Assembly: GCF_006345805.1 (NCBI RefSeq)
Contig: NC_043026.1
Span: forward strand, 5,022,001-5,086,000
Direction of reading: 5' to 3'
Source: Octopus sinensis
Lineage: Eukaryota
DNA: 64,000 bases
Positions 4,215-62,988 of the stretch are shown here, in pieces. The notes under the pieces were generated by a model. It made no database searches and had not been told where the DNA came from. It saw only the letters and a list, made by a program, of their open reading frames with translations. Numbering within the stretch: position 1 is the stretch's first letter; each line of letters begins with the position of its first letter. The position numbers and the translations under genes are program-made.

Positions 4215-4580
4215 TGATGACGACGACGATGATGGTGATGATGATGATGATGATGGTGATTATGACGATGATGATGATGGTGATGATGATGATGATGACG
4301 ACGATATGATGATGATGATGACGACGACGATGCTGATGATGATGATGATGACGATGATGACGATGATGATGACGACGACGATGATGATGATGACGATGAT
4401 GGTGATGATGATGATGACGACGACGATGATGACGATGATGATGATGATGACGATGATGATGATGATGACGATGATGGTGATGATGACGATGATGGTGATG
4501 ATGACGACGACGATGATGATGATGATGGTGATGATGATGATGATGACGACCACGACCACGACGACGACGACGACGACGGC
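4215..4580. repeat. Long compound (GAT/GAC/GGT)n trinucleotide microsatellite
   Basis: Directly visible; explains ORFs 4181-4729, 4260-4559 and 4306-4626. Confidence 0.92.
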
Positions 4581-4988: not shown

Positions 4989-7900
4989 TTATTTGTCAAA
5001 ATAAAAGAAAGCAAAAGATTGACGTCCAGGAATAATTCCAAAAACCATCAAAGAATTGTCTGAAACATCCAAACCAAGAAGTTCAACGACTTCATTATCA
5101 TCCCCTCTGAGGAGTAAATATTTTGGATTATCTTTTAATACCAGGATTTCATCATCTTCAGATGTTTCCTCTTCAATATGTCGAGGTATTTCGTAAATAT
5201 TGTTTATTAAATCTGTTATATAAACACATTCACCAATTATGGTCAGATGAGGTCTTGGAATATAATATCCCAGAAAATAAAATACTTCTTCTATTCTTAT
5301 CCTCCTCACCAAAGACTTTTCCCTGAACCATTCCACAAAACACAAAACTTCCATCCATCCAAACCCCTCCTCCTTCATCTCCCTCCTCACAACAACAACA
5401 TCACCAACAGATGTGACTCCCACATCTTCCACCCCTTCATCTCCCTCCAACCTTCCCAATCTCCTCATCTTCCCACAACACACTTCATCTTTACATTTCC
5501 CATCTTTGATATCAACCACATCCACATAATAACGGTGAAAGATGTCGGGGTCATCGCAATAATAGAAATCCTTGTTGTTCTCCCATCTTCTTTTGTATTT
5601 CTTGTGTCTCTCTTCTTGAGTTATGTCTCTAATATAATGACCACCACACACGAGTTGATTGTCGTTGTATTTATAAATCCTGTTGTAGTATTTCTCAGTT
5701 CTGATGGTTTTTAAACGATGGAGATCCCTGTTGAAGACCCTCATTTCTCTCCCAAAGGCGACAATGAAACATTCCTCTGTCCACCGACATATGTCCAGTG
5801 GTGGTCGTTGTTGTTGTTCATGTTGAAGTATGTCCACTGTTGTTGTTGTTGTTCTGATTAATGTGACACTTTCTCGAAATATCAATACACTCACATTCTC
5901 ATCTAACTTAATTAGTTTACTGTTCCAGTCTCTAATGTCCCTATAATCATAATCAACAGGTTCCTCGAATGCAGGAATGGAAAAAGGGACCATTGCTGTC
6001 CTATATGGAAGTCTCCTCACTGATATTTCATCAATTCCTGAATTATTAATCTCCGCTATGTAATTACCACATCTCACCTTTAATCTACCTTCACCAATTA
6101 TTTCACCTGATTTACCTCTTCTTCTTCCTCCTCCATCTCCATCTCCTCCTCTGAATTCCAATTTATTAATTAATTCATTACTGAATATTTCCTTGTTCGT
6201 TTCAGATGTAATGGAAGGGAAACGAAGACCAAAATCAAGATTTAATGACGACACAGATTCCAGAATGTTCACTTGGTCCCCATCAATCTTTATGCAATGA
6301 CATTCAATCAATTCATTATGTACACACCAGTAAATACCCGCCACTTTTCTCCATATTACACCATAAGGGATGAGACTCGACCAAACTTGAGATGTCTGCA
6401 AATCTTCTCCATTCAGTTGAAGTATTTCTTTCCTTTTAGGAACCGTGGCCATTATGTGTGATTCTTGTGTAAAACACACACCACCAACTAAACTTGCAAC
6501 ATTTCTGTGACATAGCAACTGGCCGTCTTCATTGAATATTTTAACATTTCCATTATTGGCTTTTTCACACACAACTGTCTTTCCTTCCTCAGAGACATCA
6601 AAATCTTTCACTTGAACAGGACATTCGTCTGTTTGTAAACGAGCAACCGGGAAGCTGTCTCGATTCACCATAAACAACCCTTCAACATACAATTCAATCT
6701 CTCTCCTTCCCCTCCAGGGGCTTCCAACAAACCTTGGTCCTTTACAGTCTATACTGGAGAAATATACTTCATCTTTATAAATTCTTTTATTTAAAAATAT
6801 TCTCTTGTATTCCCCATTCTGGGTCAAACACAAAATGTTTCGACATCCGGATGAAACAAAATATTTCTCCCACTGACCATGAATGTACAAAAAACTGTCA
6901 TCAATATTCATCTTGTCATCATCACCAACATACTGCATGTAGTGTCTGACTGAATGTAAATATTGACCACCACTGTTGAAGAAAATGATGAATCTCCAGT
7001 TGAAGACAATGATGACATCTTCATCAGTAACTTTAATATCCTGGATTGTACCAAAATAATCTCCATCTTCGTCTCTCCCTATTAATGGTTCAGGTATGTC
7101 TATTTTTTTTATTTCCTTCACACTCGAATGTATTTCATCAATATCAACAAAATGCAAATGTCTTACATCTCCCCTTTCACTAAAAACCAGTTGATTGTTT
7201 GATAAAGAAGCCACACATTCATAATCATTTCTCGTTTGGTAAATTACCAACGACAATGGAAATTCCACTTTTAATGTCCACAGTTGGTATTTATCATCTT
7301 TATAATCCCTACCCGTAATGACCAGTGTGTTTGACTGCCATCGACACATTTTAATATAACCATAAACATTCACTTTGATTGAATCCCATAGGTGACCATC
7401 CAATGTGAATATCTTAATGTATCCATTATTCCTGTCATATCCTGCAATCAGATTATTTTCAGTAAGAACCAAACGATTAATCTCCGCTGGTTCTTTGTCT
7501 CCCAAATGTTTAGGGAGAAGAATATGTCTGGCTTTATCAGAAACTGTCAGGTCCTGTAGATATAAAGTGGAAGACAACATTTCACTGAGAGAAATGTTTC
7601 TGGAAAATACATCCACCAGGTCGATATAATAATTAAGTTGATTATTAGTAACGAGATCATTAACCAACAAATTCTGATCGTTTATCGCAAACATACGGCT
7701 TCTGTCTATCAGATAAACAGACGTTTGGTCAATAGATCCACCTTGGAGACTGAGGGGACGTTTCACTTGGGACATTAAAACACTGGGGACCATCTGACGA
7801 CCGCCATGACCACCACCACCTATTCTAGTGTTGTACTGAAAAGCTTTTCCCCTAGTAACAATGAATAGCTTTTCTGTTTTCTTGTCTATTGATAATGATT

Positions 7901-9059
7901 TCACAAACACAGGGATATTAATTGTCTTAATTACTTCGACTTGATTATAATAATTGATGGCTAAAATGTCTAAATGTGATGGTTTATCACAATAACAAAC
8001 AATTTCACCATCACCCATCTTACACACCCGTACATAAGGCTGCCTTAATGATACACTTCTCACTGTCTTTGATAGGTTTCCGATTACCCTTAATTGTTTC
8101 TGTAGGGGTAATGTGACCCCTATATGATTAAAATCCCATCGACATATATCTGTGGCTGTAGACGGCAGAGATAATCTGGACACAATGTCTCCTCCCTGAG
8201 AAATGTACAACAAGCAATCATGGTTGATGTCAGACACCACCAACTGTCCATTGGCCAGATTACATATTTCACCAATGACAAGTTTTTGGTCATTCTCCTT
8301 TTCTTTGAGTCGTAGATTTAGATTTCTGATATAAGGATTTTTCGTGGGTAAACGACAGCCAGATGACCGGTCTTGGTACTTGTAGAGAAGAACCCTGTTG
8401 AGTTGAGTGTCCGGGACATAAAGAGTTCCTTGGAAAACAGCAATGTCAGGGTGAACAGGGAAAGGCAGTTCCCACTGCCATTTCATTTGTCCATATAGAT
8501 CGTAACATCTGAGAATAGAGTGTCTCCTGAAGAGGACATAGAAATAAACATTATCAGAGTAGATGTGATGAGGGTAGCCATAGAATGGAAGGTATTTTTG
8601 AAAAAGTTCTTCACCACATGTGGAATAAAATACCATTTTATTTTCGTTTCCATCTACGACTACAAAATTAATTGGAGTTGCAGCAATGCTGACATTATGA
8701 TGTCTCAGAGAAATTCTTTCTGCAATGTCAACTTTATCTTCATGGATCAAGAGGATATGGACCTCGCTTTTGTTTTCAGTGGTGGTCACAGCTAAACACT
8801 TATTTGATACAATATGACATATTTTCATGTAACCAGTTTGCACCTTTATTAAAGGGCCTTTTCTTAGTTCAGGACAGGTGATATACTGAAACCCTTTCTT
8901 TTCACGATAAACTACCAGGAATCTGTTTGCGTTTATTCTACAACAGAAAGAAGGAAGCTCAAGGAAAACTGAATTATTTTGGTTAATTATTTCCCCGTTA
9001 TCAGTGAATAATTTAGCTTTCTTGTTTTTGTAAATTATTAATATAGAAGATGTAGACAT
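4989..9059 (-). CDS. 1356-aa intronless ORF with five tandem NHL/YVTN-like beta-propeller domains (C-terminal part of a roughly 1,810-aa protein)
   Basis: Uninterrupted 4-kb ORF in AT-rich DNA. Recurring blade motifs: ICNLANGQLVVSDINH, LVLTENNLIAGYDRNNGYIKIFTLDG, FDVSEEGKTVVCEKANNGNVKIFNEDG, DICRW (twice), KMCRW. The frame stays open 16 codons upstream of the Met. Confidence 0.85.
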   Translation of the reverse strand: MSTSSILIIYKNKKAKLFTDNGEIINQNNSVFLELPSFCCRINANRFLVVYREKKGFQYITCPELRKGPLIKVQTGYMKICHIVSNKCLAVTTTENKSEVHILLIHEDKVDIAERISLRHHNVSIAATPINFVVVDGNENKMVFYSTCGEELFQKYLPFYGYPHHIYSDNVYFYVLFRRHSILRCYDLYGQMKWQWELPFPVHPDIAVFQGTLYVPDTQLNRVLLYKYQDRSSGCRLPTKNPYIRNLNLRLKEKENDQKLVIGEICNLANGQLVVSDINHDCLLYISQGGDIVSRLSLPSTATDICRWDFNHIGVTLPLQKQLRVIGNLSKTVRSVSLRQPYVRVCKMGDGEIVCYCDKPSHLDILAINYYNQVEVIKTINIPVFVKSLSIDKKTEKLFIVTRGKAFQYNTRIGGGGHGGRQMVPSVLMSQVKRPLSLQGGSIDQTSVYLIDRSRMFAINDQNLLVNDLVTNNQLNYYIDLVDVFSRNISLSEMLSSTLYLQDLTVSDKARHILLPKHLGDKEPAEINRLVLTENNLIAGYDRNNGYIKIFTLDGHLWDSIKVNVYGYIKMCRWQSNTLVITGRDYKDDKYQLWTLKVEFPLSLVIYQTRNDYECVASLSNNQLVFSERGDVRHLHFVDIDEIHSSVKEIKKIDIPEPLIGRDEDGDYFGTIQDIKVTDEDVIIVFNWRFIIFFNSGGQYLHSVRHYMQYVGDDDKMNIDDSFLYIHGQWEKYFVSSGCRNILCLTQNGEYKRIFLNKRIYKDEVYFSSIDCKGPRFVGSPWRGRREIELYVEGLFMVNRDSFPVARLQTDECPVQVKDFDVSEEGKTVVCEKANNGNVKIFNEDGQLLCHRNVASLVGGVCFTQESHIMATVPKRKEILQLNGEDLQTSQVWSSLIPYGVIWRKVAGIYWCVHNELIECHCIKIDGDQVNILESVSSLNLDFGLRFPSITSETNKEIFSNELINKLEFRGGDGDGGGRRRGKSGEIIGEGRLKVRCGNYIAEINNSGIDEISVRRLPYRTAMVPFSIPAFEEPVDYDYRDIRDWNSKLIKLDENVSVLIFRESVTLIRTTTTTVDILQHEQQQRPPLDICRWTEECFIVAFGREMRVFNRDLHRLKTIRTEKYYNRIYKYNDNQLVCGGHYIRDITQEERHKKYKRRWENNKDFYYCDDPDIFHRYYVDVVDIKDGKCKDEVCCGKMRRLGRLEGDEGVEDVGVTSVGDVVVVRREMKEEGFGWMEVLCFVEWFREKSLVRRIRIEEVFYFLGYYIPRPHLTIIGECVYITDLINNIYEIPRHIEEETSEDDEILVLKDNPKYLLLRGDDNEVVELLGLDVSDNSLMVFGIIPGRQSFAFFYFDK

Positions 9060-9217
9060 AGGTAGAATATTTGTAATGTTGTAGCAATCCTCAATATCAA
9101 TATAGTTTTAAACTGGGGGTATGTAGCTGGTGGTTGTATGACAGGTTGGGCCAAAAGTCTTTATTCATTTGAATACCATGTGGTTTGCCGCAATAATCTG
9201 TTACCAAAATGGTATCT

Positions 9218-10426
9218 TTACCAACAGAAATAGAGCGGCATTTCCTGCCAATGTCCCTCCTTGTTACACCACCTTAACTGAAATCCTCTATAATTATTTG
9301 TCCCTGGAGGACATAGAAATAATTTGGTAGAGAGAGAGATTTTACTTGGGAGGTGCAGAGAATGGGTCTCTACCTCCCATAACTGTTGGCCATCCAGTTT
9401 GTAACAGATTACTCTGTTGATGCTGGCGAATGTAATTACAAGTATATTCTGGACCCCTACAGCAATATCTGTAGGGGTTTCTTTGGTAATAAATTGATAG
9501 TTAATGGTATTATCCTCCCAATCAAATTGGTAAACTGTCTTACCAAACATTTCTACACCTATAAGTGTAGAATCTTCCAAGTAACTCACCATATGTAACC
9601 CCAACTTTATCCTTTTGATCTTGAAGGTTTTGGGGCTGATAATAAGAATCATTTCTTTGAAGGGGAGGGTTGCCAGAACCATGTCTTCACTGATTCTTGT
9701 GAAACTGGTCACAGAAGATGGACAATGGACATCAATTCTGTCACTGTCTCTTGTTACTAAACTTATTGTCTTACAAAGGTGGGAATATGTCATCACTCCC
9801 TCCTCTATAATGACAATATTGGATATTATTGGGATTTCTTCAAATTCTTCTCCAGATTCCTCAATATTTACTTCTCTAGTCACAACTGGCTGAAGCGGCC
9901 GAAATTTTGTGGTTACTTTTGCTGGTTCAATGGTCTTGTGGTTGTATGGGTTGCAGGTGACATAAATGTCAAAGAGTCTTTGTTGAAACCATTCGAGGTC
10001 CTGCTCAATAGAAATATTCTGTTCTTTAGTATATTTCAGCAAAATTCCAAGTCTCTCTTTGACTTTTTCTAAAATACAATTGGCACTTAACCCCATACTT
10101 TCATAATGTTTGCTCTCCTTAACTATATGCTCCATAAACATCATGCAGCGATCATATTGAAGACGAATCCTCTGTATTTTAGCAACTATTTGTTTTTCAG
10201 CTTCTTTTGTGCTTTCTTTGTCTCCATGTGTGTTGAGTCTTGCCACAGATATGGCCTTCACTGCTGATTCTCTCTCTGAACTAACACTACAATATCCTTC
10301 ATCACTTCTCCTTGAACCATCATCTTCCTCATATTTCCACCTTTTATTGTCAACTTCTTCTTCATCCCCTTTTGGTGTTGAGTCCCTTAAAGCTCTTTTC
10401 TGAGTATTTTCAGTCTGGTCTTCCAT
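9218..10426 (-). CDS. 402-aa ORF: acidic N-terminus, coiled coil and first beta-propeller (N-terminal part of the same gene; last ~40 aa out of frame)
   Basis: Splice acceptor TTTCTTTACAG at 10435-10434 lies 7 nt before the ATG. Helical region around aa 70-150, then propeller blades (VTSFTRISEDMVLATLP; PTDIAVGVQNILVITFASINRVICYKLDGQQLW). A frameshift at the (CT)n run near 9330 leads into YFYVLQGQII...ISVGKDTILVTDY. Confidence 0.75.
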   Translation of the reverse strand: MEDQTENTQKRALRDSTPKGDEEEVDNKRWKYEEDDGSRRSDEGYCSVSSERESAVKAISVARLNTHGDKESTKEAEKQIVAKIQRIRLQYDRCMMFMEHIVKESKHYESMGLSANCILEKVKERLGILLKYTKEQNISIEQDLEWFQQRLFDIYVTCNPYNHKTIEPAKVTTKFRPLQPVVTREVNIEESGEEFEEIPIISNIVIIEEGVMTYSHLCKTISLVTRDSDRIDVHCPSSVTSFTRISEDMVLATLPFKEMILIISPKTFKIKRIKLGLHMVSYLEDSTLIGVEMFGKTVYQFDWEDNTINYQFITKETPTDIAVGVQNILVITFASINRVICYKLDGQQLWEVETHSLHLPSKISLSTKLFLCPPGTNNYRGFQLRWCNKEGHWQEMPLYFCW

Positions 10427-11914
10427 AGTGAATCTGTAAAGAAATATAAGGAAAACATTTAGCTTTGTGAAAATATTAAAGTTTCAAGGAGATGATGTTT
10501 GCTTCATCATTTGAAAAACACAAACAAAACATTTATGTATTTCTGTCAGTGAATTAATCTTGTCTAATTAATATTTAAACAACTTATTACAATCTATTCT
10601 AAGATGTATTAATAAGTTTCATTAATTACATGAAGTCTAAATATTAGAAATAATTATTTTCACTGGAAATGATATTTGCTCTCAACATCACAAAGAAATA
10701 GTCATGTGTGGCTTAGATTTATTTAACGATAATTAGTCAAAGAGATTCCCCTGCTCCAAAAGCACTCAATAACGAGACACTCTAAGCTGTAGAGAAAATT
10801 AACTTTAATGGTGTTGTACATGCTATATTATGTCCCAACACACAGCAATCATGTTCAAACTTCGTTAATATGGAACAATTAGCAAAACATAGACTTTATT
10901 ATGTTTCATAGACATTTGTCAGTACAAGTATTACTAATGATGGGACAGTCATGGTTGGCTTGGTTTCCATCATATTTACCTGGATTAACAGATAGCAATA
11001 AAGCTGGAGATGAAACTGTTCTTAACCTGACAAATGCTGTAAATCTCTCGACATTTCAATAAATCCACACAATTATCATACACAACATTGATTAACTCGG
11101 AAAGCTTATCCAAGATGGGCTTTCATATAATCACACTGATAGACAGCATGTTGAGAGGATCGTTATTATTTGTTGCTGATTGAGATCATAAAGATTGGTT
11201 AATGAATAAGCCCAATTAATGAAAGGTAGGTTCATCTTAATTATCTTTAATATAAGGGACAATGTTTGGGTAGCAATGAGAAAGATGTGTTTGTATGAAA
11301 AAGGGGTTTGGCAGGTGAAGTGTGTTTTGTTTTGTGTCAGGTGAGGAGTTATAACTTGGTGAAGTTTATTATGAAGTATTGGGGGTTTAATGAGGTGGAT
11401 TAGGAAATATTGGTGGGGGTGTTTAATGACATTCTGGTGACCCATCATCATCAGAATGATCCTCCACCGCCTCCTTGGTCTATGAAATAATGACTGTTAC
11501 TCTATTGACCCCAGGAGGAATGAAAATAAAAGAGACCTTCTTCAGGATGTCAGCTCTTTGAATAAACATGGACTAAACAACAACATATTTTGAAGAAAAG
11601 CTGGATAAGGCTATGTTGTTGTTATTGCTGTTGTTGTTGACAACAAAGTTTATAAAGCGAAAAGCAGATAATTGCAAATATTTCTATTGTAAAATTAAAT
11701 TGGAATGAATGTTTATGTTTCATTTGTGCCATTCTACTTGGTTTATTTTGAGGAAGAAAAACCTACAAAACCCTTCATAATAATTAGACTTTAATCTAAT
11801 TGTAGATGTATTTATATACACATGCATACATATATATGAATGAATGTGTATAATATGTACACAAGGATGCACATATGTATATTTATACATCCATATGTCT
11901 GTATGTATGTATGT

Positions 11915-12110
11915 ATGATCATCATTTTACCCCCACTTTCCATGCTGGAATGGGTTGGATGGTTCAAAGAATATCTTGCCTGAAGTTACATTTTCTGGTT
12001 TTCTTTCCACAGCTGGATGCTCTTCCTGACACCAACCACTGCACAATGTGCACTGGGTGCATCTTATGGCACCGTCACTAGAGACAATCGCCATGTCCTT
12101 GACAAAACTA
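11915..12110 (-). mobile_element. Old RTE LINE 3' terminal fragment
   Basis: Matches the TTTCCATGCTGG..GGGTTGGA...CTGGATGC.CTTCCT..CACCAACCAC tail of the larger RTE copies. Confidence 0.55.
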
Positions 12111-17150: not shown

Positions 17151-18762
17151 TAAAGACACAGTTACGTACCTATTTGATTTTCTATCTTAAATTTCTGTAA
17201 AATTGTTTTACAAACTTTGAATTTTCCATGAAACATAAAATCTAGAACTTTTTGTCATTAAATATAATTTACATTTTCTTTCTTTAGAATTCATCAAATA
17301 TTTTTGAAATTGTTCAAAATAATATAAACTTTCTCTTCTTGTAAAAGTATTTGAAATCCTGGACACATTTTTTATAGTATATAAAATGGTAGGAGGAAAT
17401 TAGCACAAATGTGAAGAGTGTGTGTATATATGTATGTATACAAATGTGTAACTCTCTCTCTCTCACTTTATATATATATATATATATATGAAAATATATA
17501 TATATATTCTTTCCATCATTTAATCATTAGTACTTACTGTTTAATTAAAATATCAACTCCATTTCCTAATTTAGCTGATCCACAAATAGATTCGGTTAAA
17601 ATATTTACCAGACTTAAAAAGAAATACCGATGCTAATACAATCAGTTAAATGCATCAAGGCAATGCTCCAGCATGGCCGTGGTTCAATAACTAAAGGAGT
17701 AAAACACATCAGCCACACATTACATACATAACTTGAAATCTCTACTTCACCACGACCACCACCATTTAGTCTGTTAACCTATCTCTATAAATGACACACC
17801 CTCTCTTCAATTATTATTCATGTCTTTCTCATCCACAAATCTACACTTTAAGAAAAAAATCATCACTATTCTATTTCTCAACCAAGCTGATAATTCCACA
17901 GAAATCTCCAAGAATATTTCTAAATTTACCAAATTATAACATAGATTATTCCTTCAAATACAATATTTAAATGTAATTTATAAAAATATATCAAAACTAT
18001 AATCTTTTAAAATTTAATAGGATGTTTAACTTTTATAATGTTAGAATACAATTTATAAAGTTGAAATATTAAAATTATTTTTATAAAAATTATATTTGAA
18101 ATGTAACAAATATATTTGTTTAAAATTATGGCTTCTGTTGACGAAAGTTAATTCTTATCTAGTCACCCTATAGTCAGACATTCTAGCCATGACCTTACCA
18201 ATGTGTTATTATCTAATATGTTTTTAAGGGCATTTTTGGGGGACTTTGTTGTTGGTTTGTAATAGAGTTCATAATATTTGCAGACAATGTGAAATATTTC
18301 CCAGAAGCCATCCATCTAATAAATAATATTGAAGATGGTGAGAAAACATATTTAATGCATTGTACATTAAAATGTTGATGTAGGATAAAGATGTGCTGAG
18401 AGAGAAAATATATGTTGTCAGCAAATTGTTTAATATTTAAACAATTCTTCTTGTTTGCTTCAAGATATAAAATAGAAATGAAATCACCAGAACAATTCCA
18501 TTTATATACAAAGTTTAATATTAAAATCAAAAATCAGTTTTAAAGAATTTCATTGATTGAAAAAAGAAAAAGATCAATTAGTAGAGTCGTTAGAACATAG
18601 GGACTTAATACCTTGTGGTATTTATTCTCTTTGTCTGCTGAATTCAAATCCTGCCGAGATTAATTTTTATTTTTATTATGCTAGTGTCAATAATTAAAAT
18701 GCCAATCTGAGGTGGTGGTCTGATGGAATTATATATTTGACAATATTCCTTGTAGTATTTAA

Positions 18763-18976
18763 CCCTTTCGCTACTGTATTTATTTTGAGATGATCTGTGT
18801 TTCTTTTAATTACTTTGGATATAACAAAGAAGTTAGTAAAATAAATTCGTTATTATGAAGTTAGAGTTAGGAACATAAATTGTGACTAAGTTTTGGTGGA
18901 AGATTTTAATTTAAAACTTATGAAAATAAGACATTTGTACTCAGAGCCAGTTTCAGCTGGGTTGTTAATGAAAGGG
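18763..18976. mobile_element. piggyBac-like MITE
   Basis: TTAA|CCCTTTCG...AAAGGG ends; inverted homolog of 45540-45749. Confidence 0.75.
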
Positions 18977-19596
18977 TTTTTGTGGTTCTTTGTGATCTGA
19001 GTTCAAATCCTTATGTTGCCGCCCTGGGTTTCAGACTTAATCTATAACCTTTTTCAACACCATCACCTGGCCCTTTTAGCAGAGGATTTCTCTGATGTAT
19101 ATTACGTCTCTTGTTTTGAGAATGTCTTTCTTCCATTCCCCACTCTTGAAGACCCTGGAACTAAAAAGGGCCATTGGCAAGGCCTTCTTCCTTGACTAAA
19201 CTTTGAAAGACATTAAATTTACTAAAAACAATTTAACATCCATAAAATTGATTTACAAATTTTAAATTTCATTTGAGAATTAGAAATCTACTGGAAACAA
19301 CTTAAAATGCTGTATCCTTAGATGAACATTTCCATTTCCTTAATTTCCATCAAATAGTTTTGACCTTGTCATAACCAAACTATCCTTTATATTATATTCT
19401 GGAAATGAAATGTTTTGCTTATAATGTAACTCTGTGAAATGTTTGAACATTTTCTAGTATGAAAAATACTGCCTGAAAATAAAACAATTTTCAACATAAC
19501 AGCATAATTACATTTGACATAGTTGTAAGGAATATTTCACACTGTAAATGTGTTAATGAAGTTGTTAATTAAGATAATTATCATAAAAGTACTTAC

Positions 19597-19730
19597 TTGA
19601 GTCAATAATTACGTTTGAATTTCAGCCTCAAGTCTTTCTGTCTGTGAGTTCAGTTGAAAGAACTGGCAAAAATGTGATAATCCCTACTGATGAGGCTTAT
19701 TTATAAATAGCAGGAAGAAGTGGGCGTTAA
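19597..19730 (-). promoter_or_regulatory. Predicted promoter and non-coding exon 1 (19675-19597) of the propeller gene
   Basis: Minus-strand TATAAATA at 19705-19698. Inr-like TCA(+1)CATT with the A exactly 30 nt downstream (19675). GGAA/ETS-like and GT-box motifs upstream, an ATG-free exon, and a consensus donor CAA|GTAAGT at 19596. Confidence 0.5.
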
Positions 19731-20140
19731 CGCCTCCTGTGTGTGTGTGTAGTGTGAAATTTGCACACAAGCTGTTATGTATTTGATCACGTAGACAAAT
19801 GATAAAGCCTAGACATGTCCTTCATGTGTGTCTCTATATTATGTCTATATATATATATACTCGTATGTATGGATGTGTGTGTGCTAGGTTCCCACTACAG
19901 GGAAAAAGGGATAAATACTTGCAAACACACACACACACACATATATAAATGTATATACAATTATTTCTGTGTGCATAGATAGATGCGTATTTACATATAT
20001 ATATAAATATAATACATACACATATATATATAATATATTTAGTGTGTGTGTATTGTGTCTGCCTCCAGTCTAGTGATTAAGCAACTGCTATAATTAACAG
20101 TATTACTAATTACGACATACAAAGCAAATACACTGAGAAA

Positions 20141-20179
<39 letters not shown>

Positions 20180-20521
20180 CAAAACTATATATGCAGACGT
20201 GTGTGTGTATGCACACTTACATATACATAGATAGTCACACACACACACACACACACACACATGTACTGAAGAACCTTGTGGTTTGCTAGAAGCCTTGTCA
20301 TTGGAGACTGACAGCTTCTTACAATGTAGAAAGGCAAAAGTCATCTTTTTATATTTCGGGAAATATGTAAATGTTACTTAACTGACCCTTTCCACATTGG
20401 AAGGGGCTCTCCATCTTCATCATTTTATTAGTTTCATATGTGTGCGTGTGTGTTCAGCTTCATTTATATATCATCATCATCATCATCACTGTACATATTT
20501 GTTTTGTATATATATTTGTTT

Positions 20522-31493: not shown

Positions 31494-34400
31494 TCATCAT
31501 CATCATCATTTAACGTCCGCTTTCCATGCTAGCATGGGTTGGACGGTTCAACTGGGGTCTGGGGAGCCCGAAAGCTGCACCAGTCCAGTCAGATCTGGCA
31601 GTGTTTCTACAGCTGGATGCCCTTCCTAACGCCAACCACTCCGAGAGTGTAGTGGGTGATTTTATGTGCCACCGACACAGGTGCCAGACGAGGCTGGCAA
31701 ACGGCCACGCTCGGATGGTGTTTTTTATGTGCCACCGACACAGGTGCCAGACGAGGCTGGCAGACGGCCACGCTCGGATGGTGTTTTTTATGTGCCACCG
31801 ACACAGGTGCCAGACGAGGCTGGCAGACGGCCACGCTCGGATGGTGTTTTTATGTGCCACCGACACAGGTGCCAGACAAGGCTGGCAGACGGCCACGCTC
31901 GGATGGTGTTTTTATGTGCCACCGACACAGGTGCCAGATGAGGCTGGCAAACGGCCACGATCGGATGGTGCTTGTTACGTGCCACAGCACGGAGGCCAGT
32001 CGATGCGGTACTGGCTACGGCCACGTTCGGATGGCTTTCTTATGTGCCACGTGCCACCGGCACTGGTACCACAAAGATACAAATTCCATTGATGTTCATC
32101 TATTTTGATTTGTTTTGATTTTCACTTGTCTCAACAGGTCTTCACAAGTGTCACAAGAAGGAAGGTATGCACAGGTGGACTGACTACGTCCCAGGTAGGG
32201 GCCATGGGTTATGGCCTCACTAGTCTTGCCGGGTCTTCGGATGGTGTTTTTATGTGCCACCGACATAGGTGCTAGATGAGGCTGGCGAACGGCCACGATC
32301 GGATGGTGTTTGTCATGTGCCCACCGCACTGACTACGGCACTGATGGATTTCTTATGTGCCACAGGCACTGGTACCACAAGATACAAATTCCATTGATGT
32401 TCATCTATTTTGTCTATTTTGATTTGATTTGATTTGATTTTCACTTGCCTCAACCGGTCTTCACAAGTGTCACAAGAAGGAAGGTATGCACAGGTGGACT
32501 GACTAGTCTTGCCGGGTCTTCGGAAGGTGTTTTTATGTGCCACCGACACAGGTGCCAGATGAGGCTGGCGAACGGCCATGATCGGATGGTGTTTGTTACG
32601 TGCCCACAGCACGGAGGCCGGTCGATGCGGAACTGGCTACGGCCACGTTCGGATGGTTCTCTTGTGTGCCACCGGCACTGGTACCACAAAGTGTGTGCCA
32701 CCGGTACCACAAAGATACAGATTCCATTGATGTTCATCTATTTTGATTTGTTTTGATTTGATTTTCACTTGCCTCAACAGGTCTTCACAAGTGTCACAAG
32801 AAGGAAGGTATGCACAGGTGGACTGACTACGTCCCAGGTAGGGGCCATGGGTTATGGCCTGACTAGTCTTGCCGGGTCTTCGGATGGTGTTTTTATGTGC
32901 CACCGACACAGGTGCTAGATGAGGCTGGCGAACGGCCATGATCGGATGGTGTTTGTCATGTGCCCACAGCACGGAGGCCAGTCGATGCGGTACTGGCTAC
33001 GGCCACTTTCGGATGGTTTTCTCTTGTGTGCCACCGGCACTGGTACCACAAAGATACAAATTCCATTGGTGTTCATCTATTTTGATTTGTTTTGATTTAA
33101 TTTTGATTTTGATTTTGATTTTCACTTGCCTCAACAGGCCTTCACAAGTATCACAAGGAGGAAGGTATGGCCTGACTAGTCCTGCCGGGTCCTCTCATGC
33201 ACAGCACACTTCCATAGGACTCGGTCTTCAGTCATTTCCTTGGTGAGACCTAAAGTTCGAAGGTCGTGCTTCACCACCTCGTCCCAGGTTTTCCTGGGTC
33301 TACCTCTTCCACATGTTCCCTCAACTGCTAGGGTGTAGCACTTTTGCACACAACTATCTTCAGCCATTCTCGTCACATGACCATACCAGCGCAGCCGTCT
33401 CTCTTGCACACCACAACTGACACTTCTTAGGTTCAACTTTTCTCTCAAAGTACTTACACTCTGACGATTATGAACACTGACATTACACATCCATCGGAGC
33501 ATACTGGCTTCATTTCTTGCAAGCTTACGCATATCCTCAGCTGTCACGGCCCATGTTTCACTACCATGTAGCATGGCTGTACGTACACACGCATCATATA
33601 GTCTGCCTTTTACTCTTAGCGAGAGGCCTTTTGTCACCAGCAGGGGTAAGAGCTCTCTAAACTTTGCCCAGGCTATTCTTACTCTAGCAGTTACACTTTC
33701 AGCACACCCACCCCCGCTACTGACTTGGTCTCCTAGGTAGCGGAAGCTATCAACTACTTCTAGTTTGTCTCCCTGGAACGTGGTAGAAGTTGGTCTCTGC
33801 ACATTTCCAGTGTTTATTTCTCCTGAGCATCTGCCACAGACAAAAACTATTTTCTTAGTTAGCCTTCCTTTGACATTGCTGCACCTCTTATGTGTCCATA
33901 GCTTACACTTGGTGCACCTTATAGAGTTTCTACCTACACCTTTTTTACAGATCGAGCAGGGCCATCTACCTGAAGTCGTTTGTGGTTGGTCCACCTTCCT
34001 ACTTATTAGGACTTTGGTTTTGGCTAGGTTGATTCTAAGGCCCTTCGATTCTAATCCTTGTTTCCACACCTGAAACTTCTCCTCCAGTTCTGATAGTGAC
34101 TCAGCAATTAGAGCAAGGTCATCAGCATATAGGAGCTCCCAGGGGCATCCTGTCTTAAATTCTTCCGTTATTGCCTGGAGGACTATGATAAATAGGAGGG
34201 GGCTGAGGACTGAACGTTGGTGGACCCCAACCTCTACCCGGAATTCTTCACTGTACTCGTTGCCAACCCTCACCTTACTAGCTGCGTCTCTGTACATGGC
34301 TCGCACAGCTCTCACTAACCTTCATCTATCCCTAGTTTCCTCATTGACCACCAGATAAGGGATCGGGGGACCCTGTCAAAGGCTTTCTCTAAGTCAACAA

Positions 34401-35540: not shown

Positions 35541-37797
35541 CATCATCATCATCATCATCATTTAGCGTCCGCTTTCCATGCTAGCATGGGTTGGACGTCT
35601 GTGAAGCCAGAAGGCTGCATCAGGCTCAGTCTATCTGGCAGTGTTTCTACGGCTGGATGTCCTTCCTAACGCCAATCACTCCGTGAGTGTAGTGGGTGCT
35701 TTTTACGTGGCACCCGCAAAGGTGCCAGACGGAGCTGGCAAACGGCCACAGACGGATGATGCTTTTTACGTGCCACCAGCACGGGGGCCAGGCGAGGCTG
35801 GCAACGGCCACGAATGGTGCTTTTTACGTGTCACCGGCATGGAGGCCAGTCGGGGCGGCGCTGGCAACGGCCACAATTGGATGGTTCGCTTACTTGTCAC
35901 AGGCACTGGTACCACAGCTGCAATTTCCATTGATGTTGATCGACTTCGATTTTGGTTCTGCTTTCTGATATCTGATTTGATTTGGTTTGATTTTGATTTT
36001 CACTTGCCTCAACGGGTCTTCAAAATTGGAGTTTTGTGTCCCAAGAAGGAAAGGTATGTATAAGTCGACTGGCTACATACCAGGTAGAGGCCACGGGTTA
36101 TGGTCTCACTAGTCTTGCTGGGTCTTCTCACGCATAGCATACTTCCATAGGTCTCAGTCTCTAGTCATTAACTTGGTGAGACCTAAAGTTCAGAGGTCGT
36201 GCTTCACCGCCTCGTCCCAGGTTTTCCTGGGTCTACCTCTTCCACAGATTCCCTCAACTGCTAGGGTGTGGCACTTTTGCACACAACTATCTTCAGCCAT
36301 TCTCGTCACATGACCATACCAGCGCAGACGTCTCTCTTGCACACCACAACTGATGCTTCTTAGGTCCAACTTTTCTCTCAAGGTACTTACACTCTGTCAA
36401 TTATGAACACTGACATTACACATCCATCGGAGCATACTGGCTTCATTTCTTGCGAGCTTACGCATATCCTCAGCAGTCACAGCCCATGTTTCACTACCAT
36501 GTAGCATGGCTGTACGTACACATGCATCATACAATCTGCCTTTTACTCTGAGCGAGAGGCCTTTTGTCACCAGCAGGGGTAAGAGCTCTCCAAACTTTGC
36601 CCAGGCTATTCTTACTCTAGCAGTTACACTTTCAGCACACCCACCCCCGCTACTGACTTGGTCACCTAGGTAATAGAAGCAATCAATTATTTCTAGTTTT
36701 TCTCCCTGGAATGTGGCGGAAGGTGCTCTCTGTGCATTTTCAGAGTTTATTGCTCCTGAGCATCTGCCACAGACAAAAACTATTTTCCTAGTTAGCCTTC
36801 CTTTGACATTGCTGCACCTCTTATGTGTCCTTAGCTTACACTTGGTCCACTTTATAGAGTTTCTACCTACACCTTTCTTACAGATCGAGCAAGGCTATCT
36901 ACCTGAAGGCGTTTGTGATTGGTCTAACTTCCTACTTATTAGGACTTTGGTTTTGGCTAGGTTGACTCTAAGGCCCTTCGATTCTAAACCTTGCTTCCAT
37001 ACCTGAAACTTCTCCTCCAGTTCTGATAGTGACTCAGCAATTAGAGCAAGGTCATCAGCATAGAGGAGCTCCCAGGGGCATCCTGTCTTGAATTCCTCCG
37101 TTATTGCCTGGAGGACTATGATAAATTGGAGGGGACTGAGGACTGAACCTTGGTGGACCCCAACCTCTACCCGGAATTCTTCCCTGTACTCGTTGCCAAC
37201 CCTCACCGTACTAGCAGCATCTCTGTACATGGCTCGCACAGCTCTCACTAACAATTCATCTATCCCTAGTTTCCTCATTGACCACCAGATAAGGGATCGG
37301 GGGACACTGTCGAAGGCTTTCTCCATGTCAACAAAAGCCAGGTACAGGGTCTTATCTTTGGCTAGGTATTTCTCCTGCAGCTGTCTTACCAGGAATATAG
37401 CATCAGTAGTACTTTTCCCTGGCACGAACCCAAACTGCATCTCATCTAAGCTAACTCTCTCTCTAATTAGTTGGGCCATAACCCTCTCCGTAACCTTCAT
37501 TACCTGATCCACCAACTTGATACCTCTGTAATTATTTGTATCTAGGGCGTCACCTTTACCTTTGTAGCAGTTGACTATTATGCTGCTACATCAGTCTTTG
37601 GGTATGACTCCTTCGTGTATCACCTGGTTAACTATACGGGTGACTAGGCTATAGCCGACACTGCCAGATATTTTGAGCATCTCTGCAGTATTTCCTGATG
37701 GGCCTGGGACTTTCCCTGTTTCCATGCTTGTAATTGCCTTAACTACTAAGGAACTGTCAACTCGGATTGCTGGTCCCTTTGTTGGGTCGACATTGGG
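35541..37797 (-). mobile_element. 5'-truncated RTE-clade LINE (copy B)
   Basis: ORFs 37591-37854, 36895-37515 (LLYADD) and 36190-36381; 3' UTR with 4 diverged stem-loop units and a (GAT)n tail. Confidence 0.95.
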
Positions 37798-38030: not shown

Positions 38031-38091
38031 GCATTGCCCTGGGGTTAATATAATCAAATTTCCCGGGTCTTTTCCTTTTGAATGGCACTTT

Positions 38092-38860
38092 GTAACATAA
38101 TTTCTAGGTAACTAACAAAGTTTTAAACTTCGTATACTGGTAGAATGTGTTTATAAAACATCATTTTCTCTTGGCTTTATTGAGAAAATTCTATAGGTTG
38201 TAACATAATTTCTAGGTAAGTAACAAAGTTTTAAACTTCGTATACTGGTAGAATGTGTTTATAAAACATCATTTTCTCTTGGCTTTATTGAGAAAATTCT
38301 ATAGGTTGTAACATAATTTCTAGGTAACTAACAAAGTTTTAAACTTCGTATACTGGTAGAATGTGTTTATAAAACATCATTTCTTTTGGCTTTATTGAGA
38401 AAATTCTATAGGTTGTATCGGTAACTATAATTTTAGGTAAGTATAACATTTTTAACTTGTCTATACTGGTAGATGTGTTTATAAAACATCATTTTCTCTT
38501 GGCTTTATTGAGAAAATTCTATAGGTGTAACATAATTTCTAGGTAACTAACAAAGTTTTAAACTTCGTATACTGGTAGAATGTGTTTTATAAAACATCAT
38601 TTTCTCTTGGCTTTATTGAGAAAATCTATAGGTTGTTAACATAATTTCTAGGTAAGTAACAAAGTTTTAAACTTCGTATACTGGTAGAATGTGTTTATAA
38701 AACCATCATTTTCTCTTGGCTTATTGAGAAAATTCTATAGGTTGTAACATAATTTCTAGGTAACTAACAAAGTTTTAAACTTCGTATACTGGTAGAATGT
38801 GTTTATAAAACATCATTTTCTCTTGGCTTTATTGAGAAAATTCTATAGGTTGTAACATAT
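38092..38860. repeat. Tandem array of seven 108-bp units with alternating A/B variants
   Basis: Unit starts at 38092, 38200, 38308, ~38421, 38527, 38635 and 38744; partial unit at 38852. Confidence 0.95.
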
Positions 38861-38864
38861 TTCG

Positions 38865-46568: not shown

Positions 46569-47878
46569 CATCATCATCATCATCATCATTTAGCGTCCGC
46601 TTTCCATGCTAGCATGGGTTGGACTGTTCAACTGGGGTCTGTGAAGCCAGAAGGCTGCATCAGGCCCAGTCTGATCTGGCAGTGTTCCTACGGCTATTTG
46701 CCTTTCCGAACGCCAACCACTCCGTGAGTGTAGTGGGTGCTTTTTACGTGCCACCCGCACAGGTGCCAGACGGAGCTGGCAAACGGCCATGGACAGATGG
46801 TGTTTTTTACATGCCACCAGCACGGGGGCCAGGCGAGGCTGGCAACAGCCATGAATGGATAGTGCTTTTTACGTGCCACGAGCACGGAGGCTAGTCGCGG
46901 CGGGGCTGGCAACGGCCACGATTGGATGGTTCACTTACTTGTCACCGGCACTGGTATCACAGCTGCAATTTTCATTAATGTTGATCGACTCCGATTTTGG
47001 TTCTGCTTTCTGATATCTGATTTGATTTGGTTTGATTTTGATTTTGATTTTGATTTTCACTTGTCTCAACGGGTCTTCACAAGTGGAGTTCTGTGTCCCA
47101 AGAAGGAAAGGTATGTACAAGTGACTGGCTACATATCAGGTAGAGACCACGGGTTATGGTCTCACTAGTCTTGCCGGGTCTTCTCACGCACAGCATACTT
47201 CCATAGGTCTCGGTCTCTAGTCATTTCCTTGGTGAGACCTAAAGTTCAGAGGTCGTGCTTCACCGCCTTGTCCCAGGTTTTCCTGGGTCTACCTCTTCCA
47301 CAGATTCCCTCAACTGCTAGGGTGTGGCACTTTTGCACACAACTATCTTCAGCCATTCTCGTCACATGACCATACCAGCGCAGACGTCTCTCTTGCACAC
47401 CACAACTGATGCTTCTTAGGTCCAACTTTTCTCTCAAGGTACTTACACTCTGTCAATTATGAACACTGACATTACACATCCATCGGAGCATACTGGCTTC
47501 ATTTCTTGCGAGCTTACGCATATCCTCAGCAGTCACAGCCCATGTTTCACTACCATGTAGCATGGCTGTACGTACACATGCATCATACAGTCTGCCTTTT
47601 ACTCTGAGCGAGAGGCCTTTCGTCACCAGCAGGGGTAAGAGCTCTCTTAACTTTGCCCAGGCTATTCTTACTCTAGCAGTTACACTTTCAGCACACCCAC
47701 TGACTTGGTCACCTAGGTAGCGGAAGCTATCAACTACTTCTAGTTTTTCTCCCTGGAACGTGGTAGAAGTTGGTCTCTGCACATTTTCAGAGTTTATTGC
47801 TCCTGAGCATCTGCCACAGACAAAAACTATTTTCCTAGTTAGCCTTCCTTTGGCATTGCTGCACCTCTTATGTGTCCA
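46569..47878 (-). mobile_element. 5'-truncated RTE-clade LINE (copy D, same subfamily as B)
   Basis: ORFs 47453-47884 and 47246-47437; the 3' UTR is nearly identical to copy B. Confidence 0.93.
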
Positions 47879-59754: not shown

Positions 59755-60253
59755 TATCTCATAGATATACACGTAATATGGCCACAAGCAGAGAGACGTA
59801 CACACATGTTTTGTATATGACTGTGTACTTGTGGCTGCATGTGTTTATATTGGTGAATGTATGTATAAAACGCGTGTTATAATTCTGCGAGTTGGTTTCC
59901 TGTGGATTCGCGTTCAAATCCATGTCAAGGCAGAGGTAGAGAAGGAAAACTATTTCCTTATTTCTCTTTCTATATTGAGTAAAATGATTGCCTCACACCT
60001 ACACATCTGCACAAATAGGACGGATGTCCCTTTCCATCACTGAACGACGTGAGTGTGTATGTGTTGGATTGTTTGCATGTGTGTGTGTGTGTGTGTCTTG
60101 AGGACTCAGTAGTAGAATGGGAGGCTGAAACACTCCTTGTTAAATATACCACTTCCATAAACAACCAAACCCCAGACATTGGTACAGAGTGGAGGTTGTT
60201 GTAGATAAAGACAGAATGAGAGAGTCAAATACAGACATATATATATATATATA

Positions 60254-60276
60254 CTAGCAGTATCGCCCGGCGTTGC
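60254..60276 (-). mobile_element. Helitron 3' terminus fused to the Tx1 ORF2
   Basis: 23/23 identical to 41334-41356 (GCAACGCCGGGCGATACTGCTAG), followed by T. Confidence 0.85.
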
Positions 60277-62938
60277 GGGAAAGCGTGCCTCACAAACGGC
60301 GACCACACCTGTTCACCGTCGTCTACATAGAGCCAGAGATGTCGCAGTCTCAGCGCGTGTCTGCGCATCATCAACCACGGCATGCCCAGCCCTCCTTTTA
60401 ACGGGTGTTGACAGCAAATGGATCGCCTGACCATCAGGACGCATCCTTTCCACAAGAAGCGGAAGAGAATGCGTTCTAGTTTGGTTATGGTAGGGTCGGG
60501 ACAAGGTACGACGGTCAGGCGGTAGTAGATGACGGACGCGATGTACGCGTTCGCCACTTCCGCCCGACCTTTTAGGGACAGTTTCCTATCGGCCCATTGC
60601 TGGGCGAGAGTGACCACCCTACTCGTTATCTCGTTCCAGTTCTTCTCCATTTGGAGGTCCGGACCGAACCAGACCACGAGCAACTTAACCGGGCCGTCTG
60701 TCCAGCGTCCCACGACGGAGGTACTGGTGGACGGCATGGGCTTGCTTCTCCAGGTGCCGAGCCGCAAGCCCACTGACTTTTCCCAGTTGATTTTTGCTCC
60801 TGTCACCGCTTCGTAGTCTTTTAGTGTCTCGCCGACCCGCTCGATGTGCGCGTGGCTTGACACTATGACGGTGACGTCGTCCGCGTATGCAGACACGCTC
60901 GTCCCGCATCCTAATTCTCGCGGGATGCCCCTCAGAGTCGCCAGCTTCCGCAGTAGTGGCTCAAGAGTCAATACGTATAGAAGCGCCGAGAGGGGGCATC
61001 CCTGACGGACCGAACGTGCAATGTCGAAAGGTCTCGATACATGTCCATTTACGCGAATTACCGAACGGATGCCTCTGTACAAGGCAGCTATCCAGCCGCG
61101 GAAGACGGGACCGAAACCAGCCGCTCTCAGGACTGCCTCCAAGTATCTATGGTCTACCCTATCAAAGGCTTTCGATTGATCCAAGTTGATCAGGGCCCCA
61201 CCCATGCCAGGTTCGTTAACTACCCTGTCTATGATGTAGCGCATCAGATGGAGGTTGTCATGGATGCTCCGGCCCGGCACGGCGCACGTTTGTGCGTTGT
61301 CGACCAGTTTCTCGATGACAAGCGCCAACCTCTTGGCTAACACCTTTGTCAAAATTTTCAGGTCTGCATTGAGCAGAGTGATTGGCCTAAAGTTATCTAT
61401 AATGTTTCCCTTGTTTGGATCTTTCTTCAGCAGAGTTACAGCTCCTCGACTCACAAAACCGGGTATGCTCCCGTTTTGCTGCCAGTTGCAGTATACCGCT
61501 GCCAAGGCGTCTCCAAACAAGTCTGGCATACAATTGTAAAACTCGTAGGGTAGACCATCCAAACCCGGTGATTTGTCCCTCGAGCATTCTGCCATCGCTT
61601 CCCGCACTTCCGCCGCCGTGATGGCACCTTCGCAGCACCCTGCCTTTCTTGTCGAGAGTCGTGGCAGGCTATGTAGGTAGGCACTGAAGTCCACCCTACG
61701 TTCTTGCCCTCCACTCGTCCCGAACAGTCGGGCAAAATGCTGCTGAAAGGCCTCACACATTTTACTTGGCTCGAGCAATTCGGCCCCTGTTCATCTACCA
61801 GTGACCGAATGGTGGCTTTGTTGCCCTGTTGCGTCTCTGCCACCCGGGCCTCTCTCGCGGCTCCAACACCTTCGTTCCTTAGAGCACGCATCCTAGCTCT
61901 GACAGCACATCCTTCGTGTTTGGCGTTGAAGTGTTGGTCGAGGGCCAACCTCGCCGCCAAAACGTCGGATGCGTTGCCGCTTCTAATTGCCTTTTCTAGC
62001 TTCTTAACTAGCTCACCTTCTACTCTATTTCTATCTATGGCTAGTGCTTTGCTGTACCTAATCGCTTCTGCTTTTACTGCTCTCTTGAGGGCAAACCACC
62101 ATTTGTTGTTGATGATGGCTCCCGTCAAAGCCCTCTTTACTAGTGTGCTAATCCGGTCTCTGAAAACTTGTCTGGACGGGAATGATGCGTTCAGTTTCCA
62201 GTACCAGGGACCCTGTCTATGTGCCTTATCTAAGTCTAGCGTACACGTCACCAATTTGTGATCCGTGTAGCTGACTGTGTGGAATTGTGGACGTCCTAAG
62301 TTATCCTTGTCTACTGTCCTACACAGTATCCTATCTAGATACGATCTCGACGACCCATTGCGGTTGCTCCATGTCCACGTTGGTGCATTTGGGTGGTCGA
62401 GTCGGTACCTGTCAGACAGTTGGAATCGTCTGAGCAGGTCTCTGAGGCATTTGCATCCCCTTCTGTTTTTGTCTCTACCCACGTAGTCTACATGCGTGTC
62501 CAAGGTAGCATTCCAATCCCCCACTAAGAGTAAAGGACGAGACGTTCCCAGGAATACTTCTAGACGTCGAAAGAAATCCGCCCGACCTGTTAAGGGCGGT
62601 GCGTAGACTGATACGAGTCGAAAAGCGCACCCATTGCTGCCGTCGACATCCAGAACGATCAGTCTACCCTCCGGGTCTACGAATATCGTCTTGACTTCGA
62701 GATCCAGGCTCTTGTGAAAAAGTACCGCGGTGCCACTACCGCCCATCCTCGGCAGACAGGGAGCGAAATAAATGTTAAACTGTCCGCCAAACATGGACTT
62801 TAGGGCCCGTGGCTCGTGGAGTCTGGTCTCACTTATGGCTATGATTCCCAAATCATGTGACTTGATGTCATTTAGGAGGTATCCTTGTTTCCAAGGAGAC
62901 CCCAAGCCACGCGCATTCACACAACCAATCTTGACCAT
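60272..62938 (-). mobile_element. Tx1/L1-clade LINE ORF2: APE endonuclease plus reverse transcriptase, one frameshift near 61778, 3'-truncated
   Basis: GCVNARGL, ISETRL, GDWNA, SYLDRI, TDHK (APE); KSPGLDGLPYE, NFRPITLLNAD, DQSKAFD, RQGCPLS, AYADD (RT). Confidence 0.95.
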
Positions 62939-62988
62939 GATTCTATTGGGGTGTGTGCTTTAAAACACAAAAATGAAAGTACAGAGAG

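Follow-up and report, generated by a model that had tools for sequence, protein, structure and literature searches.

A clustered, octopod-specific family of single-exon genes predicted to encode six tandem NHL-type propellers, with a frame-broken copy in Octopus sinensis

A stretch of 64,000 nucleotides from the genome of Octopus sinensis (contig NC_043026.1, positions 5,022,001 to 5,086,000; hereafter the window) carries on its minus strand, at 4989-10426, a single reading frame of approximately 1,812 codons with a sixfold repeat, as mapped from its open reading frames (ORFs). The question raised by this locus is what kind of protein such a gene would encode and to which family it belongs. 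A preliminary description had proposed an intronless, lineage-specific gene encoding a coiled coil followed by six NHL-like propellers, lacking RING and B-box domains, belonging to no named family and possibly serving in recognition. The analysis presented here points to a member, frame-broken as assembled, of an octopod-specific family whose proteins would carry six NHL-type propellers and act within the cell as multivalent and diversifying recognition scaffolds. We would assign this reading a probability of roughly 0.6.

The coding region is distributed over three frames. The first begins with the ATG at 10426 and is closed by the TAA of 9220-9218 (ORF 10426-9221, 402 aa), the second is open at 9273-9100 (58 aa) and bridges the two long ORFs, and the third is open at 9107-4992, encoding 1372 aa, or 1356 aa when counted from the first ATG, before the stop at 4991-4989. 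When translated with the guidance of its homologs, the region yields 1812 aa, in which the six repeated motifs of the preliminary description lie at residues 239, 492, 758, 1025, 1314 and 1543, with a spacing of 229-289 aa from one motif to the next. This is the only copy of the family in the window, as judged by tBLASTn with an intact relative, and the remainder of the sequence consists of repeats and the remains of retrotransposons. The coordinates of the coding region and of the retroelements are given in Table 1.

The disruption of the frame was analyzed against an intact paralog of Octopus vulgaris, P0003 of locus L001, which consists of a single 5,406-nt exon on chromosome OX597841.1 of assembly GCA_951406725.2. 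Window positions 9999-4779 share 94.8% DNA identity with this gene. Relative to it there are four frame-breaking indels, namely insertions of 1 nt at about 9328 (inside a (CT)n run) and at about 9291, and deletions of 1 nt at about 9275 and of 2 nt at about 9106-9105, together with a TAA in the homologous frame at 9276-9274, where the window reads 'IIIEDFS*GG' and the paralog 'IIYRISAKGG'. The four indels span 225 bp, with all other indels of the gene being multiples of three. It had earlier been thought that the removal of two 1-nt insertions would restore the gene. This repair joins the ORFs mechanically only and, given the four indels and the TAA, would therefore mistranslate the region of about 9330-9273. 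The copy as assembled cannot make the full protein.

The copy is either a pseudogene of recent origin or the product of local misassembly. Four lesions within 225 bp, with 5.2 kb otherwise open, make an odd pattern for a decaying pseudogene, and the cluster would reflect a complex event of recent date or else a fault of the assembly at this place. That the gene is intact in the animal, with the four indels being assembly or consensus errors in a functional paralog, we regard as a sizeable minority possibility. It agrees with the confinement of the indels to so short a region, the rest of the gene bearing only indels of 3n, with the contact that three of the four make with short low-complexity runs ((CT)n or A-runs), and with a local substitution divergence from L001 of only about 2%, as counted from the alignment. 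The indels are, however, accompanied by adjacent substitutions and are therefore not simple changes of run length, no gene with the product of the window copy (that of the 1356-aa ORF) is on record, and the cluster does contain copies that were broken independently. One such copy, on the minus strand of locus L003 (3524-9400), has its frame broken by six indels distributed over its length. Its only annotation is that of a gene of 411 aa, and it adjoins two intact family genes within 43 kb, the copies there being tightly clustered. A lesion common to this copy and that of the window was considered and rejected, as the lesions differ.

A search with the 1372-aa piece identified at least 59 clusters at 90% identity, all of them from Octopus and all named 'uncharacterized' or 'hypothetical'. 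At least 35 of these belong to O. vulgaris, 14 to O. sinensis and 10 to O. bimaculoides. The full-length members found by this search are approximately 1,780-1,800 aa long with 41-91% identity, and the majority of those of O. vulgaris lie on one contig of 29.19 Mb. A word-indexed profile search added no taxon beyond Octopus. An exhaustive HMMER search with a profile of units D3-D6 (the repeat units are numbered D1 to D6 from the N-terminus) against 1.84 billion representatives returned 39 matches, 28 of which were family members, and when these were looked up they were found to come from Octopus and Argonauta hians only. The Argonauta protein (GAB1597371.1, 1913 aa) is collinear with that of the window along almost all of its length, the identity being 39% for residues 87-1524 and 32% for residues 1534-1812. 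One divergent member (P0065/P0107/P0108), collinear with the window protein at 30% identity, keeps more than 90% identity between the three Octopus species, and may be a conserved founder gene. It sits on the largest chromosome-scale contigs, outside the 29-Mb cluster. Full-text searches of the literature found no description of the family, no source or database gives it a name, and in this respect, as in its restriction to Octopus species and Argonauta, the preliminary description was accurate.

The single-exon structure proposed for the gene was also borne out in intact paralogs. The coding sequence is entirely contained in one exon in P0003 and P0001, and in P0016 and P0017 one exon holds all except two and seven residues, respectively. 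Upstream of the window ATG the frame is also open (10427-10483, '...LYRFT'), likewise in the L003 copy, and the gene model of P0016 splices into the equivalent of this region, just upstream of the ATG. The flanks of the family copies were found to be co-duplicated. Two blocks upstream of the window gene (10936-11942 and 17364-20507) are 92-98% identical to sequences flanking the paralogs of L001, L002 and L003; they point to segmental duplication and possibly contain a common promoter or 5' untranslated region. On the other side, approximately 450 bp 3' of the stop codon, about 111 units of a (TGA)n/(TCA)n microsatellite are found (4215-4546), and the same microsatellite follows the paralog in L002 at about 16.1-16.9 kb. 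Because it also occurs 3' of this paralog, the microsatellite belongs to the duplicated unit. Some public gene models (P0004, P0007 and P0076) show family sequence fused with C2H2 zinc-finger or transposase-like (DUF4371) sequence, or represent a fragment named 'zinc finger protein 431-like'; these fusions and names are likely annotation artefacts of a repeat-rich cluster. Taken as a whole, this is an octopod-specific, clustered multigene family of the birth-and-death type, with single-exon genes of approximately 5.4 kb.

Table 1. Features of the 64-kb window, with residues of the 1812-aa translation, the basis of each assignment and the hhalign result of each unit against the propeller profile of P0082-type proteins (AF2, AlphaFold2; pLDDT, predicted local distance difference test; RT, reverse transcriptase; LTR, long terminal repeat).
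Feature	Window position	Strand	Residues	Basis	hhalign vs P0082-type profile
Disrupted coding region, ATG to TAA	4989-10426	-		ORF and frame map; homology-guided translation of 1812 aa	
Hydrophilic disordered region and helical module (N-terminal)	9857-10426	-	1-190	AF2 of P0003	
Unit D1 (holds the lesion cluster)	9135-9856	-	191-431	AF2: 6 x 4 strands, pLDDT ~85 (P0003 190-410)	86.7%, E 4e-6
Unit D2 (conserved)	8337-9107	-	441-697	AF2: six four-stranded blades, pLDDT ~85 (P0003 430-670)	86.5%
Unit D3 (conserved)	7536-8336	-	698-964	AF2: all-beta, pLDDT 50-70 (P0003 705-915)	98.2%, E 4e-14
Unit D4 (one face hypervariable)	6669-7535	-	965-1253	AF2: six blades, pLDDT 80-90 (model residues 1-285)	99.0%, E 4e-18
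Unit D5 (fold uncertain)	5982-6668	-	1254-1482	AF2: pLDDT mostly <50 (model residues 287-500)	95.3%, over about the first 3-4 blades
Unit D6	4992-5981	-	1483-1812	AF2: six blades, pLDDT 70-94 (model residues about 510-848)	94.1%
Lesion cluster	9106-9328	-		DNA and protein alignments to intact paralog	
Non-LTR retrotransposon	60225-63971	-		gag-like zinc-knuckle ORF 63261-63971; AP-endonuclease ORF 61454-62938; overlapping RT ORF 60228-61778	
RT fragments (probably degraded retroelements)	33179-34315, 36898-37515	-		First with a PHD/C1-like zinc-finger match after RT	

To establish what the repeat units resemble, AF2 was run with family alignments on two stretches, residues 1-988 of P0003 and residues 965-1812 of the window protein. 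As proposed in the preliminary description, propellers are predicted, and by their strand counts four of the units (D1, D2, D4 and D6) are confidently modelled as six-bladed propellers with four strands to the blade. Unit D5 contains a Gly/Arg-rich loop and is almost invariant among paralogs, and the C-terminal two-thirds of D6 (window 4992-5636) are hypervariable. When the two multi-domain models were compared with the PDB using Foldseek, tandem-propeller proteins ranked at the top (E-values of 1e-14 to 1e-20), including subunits of IFT-A, DDB1, UTP/WDR proteins and LRP2/LRP4. With TM-scores of approximately 0.2 and 7-12% identity these are matches to a fold class only, and propellers of NHL, WD40 and YWTD type are not separable by them.

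The identity of the units was also approached through sequence profiles. Self-BLAST of the window pieces revealed almost no internal similarity, and a first comparison of unit against unit by hhalign linked only D3, D4 and D6, with D5 linked weakly. A sequence-profile search of the PDB gave 16 sub-threshold matches, nine of which were NHL domains (Brat, TRIM71, Thin). The HMMER search was decisive in this respect. Its best match outside the family was P0082 (E-value 1.3e-6), aligned over the whole of D4. This is a protein of the cuttlefish Acanthosepion pharaonis (CAE1315789.1) with Pfam RING, B-box and NHL domains, and it was followed by P0084 (Pfam B-box and NHL) and by P0090 and P0092 (both NHL). 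A search seeded with P0082 itself returned only four proteins. A motif of the second blade noted in the preliminary description, 'G-I-C-x-W ... V-T-L-P', is shared by the octopod units and the cephalopod RING-B-box-NHL proteins, and 'HGICLWANYEVVVTLPENKQ' of P0082 corresponds to 'ATDICRWDFNHIGVTLPLQKQ' in D3 of the window.

Each unit was then compared by hhalign with an alignment of the propellers of P0082-type proteins, with resulting E-values of 4e-6 to 4e-18 (Table 1). Each of the six motifs falls inside a segment matching this profile at 87-99%, and the sixfold repeat is upheld in this way. As controls, the N-terminal segment and a shuffled sequence gave nothing. The P0082-type propeller in turn matches the canonical propellers of filamin-NHL TRIM proteins (96.1%, E-value 3.5e-9, 194 columns). 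By these profile comparisons the units are very divergent NHL-type propellers, linked transitively to the known ones through the cephalopod RING-B-box-NHL proteins, and the NHL-like character first ascribed to them is to be understood in that sense. Pfam matched neither RING nor B-box, whether in the three pieces of the window or in any of 15 full-length members, in line with the preliminary description. Evidence of a WD40 signature was restricted to sporadic sub-threshold Pfam matches (ANAPC4_WD40 in one of the 15 members, WDR90 in two) and to WD40 templates aligning over only about 60 columns of D5 by hhalign. EGF, LDL-receptor class B (Ldl_recept_b), YD and thioredoxin domains were likewise without a Pfam match in the window pieces and the 15 members.

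The region preceding the propellers, for which a coiled coil had been supposed, is modelled only as a helical region of low confidence, with residues 1-80 of P0003 at a pLDDT below 40 and helices at approximately 54-146 at a pLDDT of about 55. Several types of this region, strongly diverged from one another (30-47% identity between types), are found in the paralogs, that of the window being 98% identical to residues 76-245 of P0002. No homology to the coiled-coil regions of P0082, P0084 and P0091 was found (hhalign 0.4%). The N-terminus is strongly hydrophilic, with only four Cys in its 190 residues, and no signal peptide or transmembrane segment was found, the maximal Kyte-Doolittle average over 19 residues being 1.5, inside a beta-strand. 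In view of the hydrophilic N-terminus and the lack of any hydrophobic segment, the encoded proteins of approximately 1,800 aa are therefore predicted to be soluble and intracellular. In the predicted architecture a helical head precedes six NHL-type propellers, and there is no E3 ligase module. The protein is not an ortholog of a known multi-propeller family such as the teneurin, LRP or NHLRC proteins, given its lack of the corresponding Pfam matches, of a signal peptide and of a transmembrane segment, and the restriction of its homologs to octopods.

Selection on the units was analyzed by the method of Nei and Gojobori in five copies, namely that of the window, P0003, P0001, P0016 and P0017. 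Within one pair the synonymous divergence (dS) ranges from 0.007 in D5 to about 0.8 in D1. Unit D1 occurs in two deep types, D4 and D6 also in two types, and D2, D3 and D5 are homogenised; the copies are mosaics that exchange segments between paralogs. The ratio of nonsynonymous (dN) to synonymous divergence, omega, is 0.3-0.6 for D2 and 0.3-0.7 for D3. In the three closest copies it is 0.39-0.46 for D2, D3 and D5 combined, 2.3-2.8 for D4 and 2.0-3.6 for residues 1598-1812 of D6. For the intact pair P0003-P0001 the bootstrap probability of dN-dS being zero or less is 0.003 in D4 and 0.0015 in D6. Purifying selection acts on four units, D2, D3 and D5 among them, and diversifying selection on a single face in D4 and in part of D6.

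This assignment to one face comes from the position of the variable sites. Sites that take as many as nine different residues across 15 close paralogs cluster in loops, and D1-D3 contain no site with five or more residue types. The strands of each blade (A-D) were ordered from DSSP strings, and the classes of loop between them were compared by mean entropy (Mann-Whitney). In D4 the B-C and D-A loops average 1.44 and 0.87 bits, against 0.11 and 0.24 for A-B and C-D (p=1e-8); in D6 the values are 0.62 and 0.88 bits against 0.06 and 0.36 (p=4e-5). In a propeller the B-C and D-A loops share one face, that by which NHL and WD40 propellers engage their ligands and by which Brat and LIN-41 bind RNA (PMC4015489, PMC5908797). 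The idea of a role in recognition, raised earlier on other grounds, gains independent support from the omega values above 1 in D4 and D6 and from the confinement of the hypervariable loops to one face.

On this evidence, a scheme for the history and function of the family can be proposed. The family has lost its RING and B-box or never had them, and it grows by local duplication, swaps segments among paralogs and sheds copies as pseudogenes. The task of holding invariant partners or of driving assembly would fall to the conserved propellers and the N-terminal module, and that of binding variable ligands to the hypervariable faces of D4 and D6, so that the array of paralogs would amount to a germline-encoded repertoire for recognition, its targets being most plausibly pathogens, transposons or other fast-evolving partners. 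An immune role is a hypothesis at this time. In its fullest form, that of a clustered germline repertoire of intracellular receptors with six NHL propellers multiplied from that of a TRIM-NHL ancestor and diversified by duplication, conversion between paralogs and positive selection, recognizing such targets by the faces of D4 and D6, the proposal is tentative, and we consider it rather doubtful.

Several observations weigh against the reading of the family as six-propeller recognition scaffolds. Units D3 and D5 are poorly modelled by AF2, and D5 may be incomplete. Pfam's own NHL model scores on none of the 15 full-length members, nor on the window pieces, even at E-values up to 1, and in direct comparison by hhalign the octopod units reach at most 9% with canonical NHL propellers; as it is the P0082-type profile that bridges the two, the NHL assignment is therefore transitive only. 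The omega values above 1 come from three non-independent pairs, by Nei-Gojobori counting, in genes that recombine. The restriction to one face rests on strand order in DSSP strings, and for D6 the strand register was revised post hoc, from homology to D4 and the NHL alignment, the first register having given the opposite pattern of loops. Both D4 (net charge -5) and D6 (net charge -15) are acidic, which in no way favors an RNA ligand and says little about others. The particular copy in the window is, in addition, frame-broken.

The charge of the two units bears directly on the foremost alternative for function, according to which the proteins would be RNA-binding regulators like their TRIM-NHL relatives, with each NHL propeller reading RNA on its top face, as in Brat and LIN-41, and the faces of D4 and D6 diversifying their specificity for RNA motifs, for example in transposon or viral transcripts. 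This would be a special case of the recognition scaffold, and we think it unlikely. The units are homologous to TRIM-NHL propellers, their variability is restricted to one face, the protein is predicted to be intracellular, and in Brat and LIN-41 one face of the NHL domain makes direct contact with RNA (PMC4015489, PMC5908797). For many NHL domains, however, the ligands are proteins and not RNA, no conserved basic patch was identified, and the acidic rather than basic net charge of D4 and D6 lends RNA binding no support, though it would still allow it.

It could also be argued that the family has no function for the host and consists of decaying retrocopies, or of ORFs riding mobile elements, with the apparent positive selection being an artefact of gene conversion and relaxed constraint. 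The genes are indeed intronless and multicopy, lie among long interspersed elements (LINEs) and duplicated flanks, and include pseudogenised copies in the window and in L003. Yet dozens of paralogs keep open frames of approximately 1,800 codons, omega is 0.3-0.5 in four units, and relaxed constraint would bring omega near 1, rather than to 2-3.6, with no confinement to alternate loops. Collinear members persist in Argonauta, and one member has remained more than 90% identical across three Octopus species. The co-duplicated flanks argue for segmental duplication over repeated retroposition, and a family without function for the host we hold to be very improbable. The weakest proposal would make the propellers ectodomain modules of a receptor or adhesion protein (LRP, teneurin or YWTD kind) located outside the cell or in its membrane. 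It can draw on the tandem six-bladed propellers of LRP2 and LRP4 among the Foldseek matches of the N-terminal model but is scarcely credible with signal peptide, transmembrane segment and the associated Pfam domains all absent, and with cytosolic WD40 scaffolds matched equally at the same TM-scores of about 0.2.

The rest of the window contains, besides the retroelements of Table 1, a dispersed unit of approximately 60 nt ('GTGCTTTTTACGTGCCACC...GCTGGCAAACGGCCA'), which occurs as short tandem arrays in at least three places (31655-32050, 35695-35856 and 46737-46891) and is matched in neither Rfam nor tRNA scans. At 38090-38863 about seven copies of a 108-nt unit stand in tandem, with 91% matches. 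Rfam and tRNA scans of the entire 64 kb returned no matches.

The innate immunity of cephalopods and the function of their lineage-specific genes are poorly understood, and the cephalopod expansions discussed so far are, to judge by the titles of papers, mainly those of protocadherins, C2H2 zinc fingers and G-protein-coupled receptors. The family described here would add a new domain architecture, with six NHL-type propellers and no E3 ligase module, in a group that is both large and clustered (at least 35 clusters in O. vulgaris, most of them on one 29-Mb chromosome) and in which a defined surface of the protein bears the molecular marks of an arms race over recognition. If the fullest form of the proposal is true, it would represent a previously unrecognised class of immune-like receptors in invertebrates. 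The family is also a natural system in which to study how the binding faces of propellers diversify. For annotation, a set of octopod 'hypothetical proteins' is brought together as one coherent family, many members of which are pseudogenised or mis-modelled.

NHL propellers and TRIM-NHL proteins are well known; we know of no eukaryotic protein, however, with six NHL-type propellers in tandem. The closest comparison is with the cephalopod RING-B-box-NHL proteins (P0082 and its relatives P0084, P0090, P0091 and P0092), whose propeller is homologous to those of the octopod family blade by blade. These proteins are approximately 650 aa long, with RING, B-box, coiled coil and one propeller, whereas the octopod proteins carry six propellers without RING or B-box, and their N-terminal helical module is unrelated by sequence to the coiled coil of the former. 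Canonical TRIM-NHL proteins (Brat, LIN-41/TRIM71, TRIM2/3/32, Mei-P26 and NHL-2) have a six-bladed propeller that presents a platform for ligands, RNA or protein, on one face. In contrast to them, the octopod proteins have neither E3 ligase module nor filamin domain, contain several propellers and obtain no Pfam NHL score, and they form a fast-evolving multigene family where the canonical proteins are conserved, single-copy regulators of development. Tandem propeller scaffolds such as DDB1, the WD-repeat subunits of IFT-A, UTP/WDR proteins and the YWTD arrays of LRP2/LRP4 likewise place several propellers on one chain, but these are conserved housekeeping or receptor proteins whose WD40 and YWTD signatures are absent from the octopod family, and the likeness is one of fold class only.

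In its behaviour, the family has other counterparts. The NLR-like WD40 proteins of fungi (HET-E/NWD) and the SPRY loops of primate TRIM5alpha are examples of germline recognition families with hypervariable ligand surfaces. The octopod family differs from these in having no NACHT/STAND NTPase, RING or SPRY domain and in the class of its propellers. By analogy, though, in its paralog arrays, its exchange of segments and the positive selection on the putative ligand-binding surface of its repeats, the family resembles the fungal HET-E/NWD proteins and TRIM5alpha.

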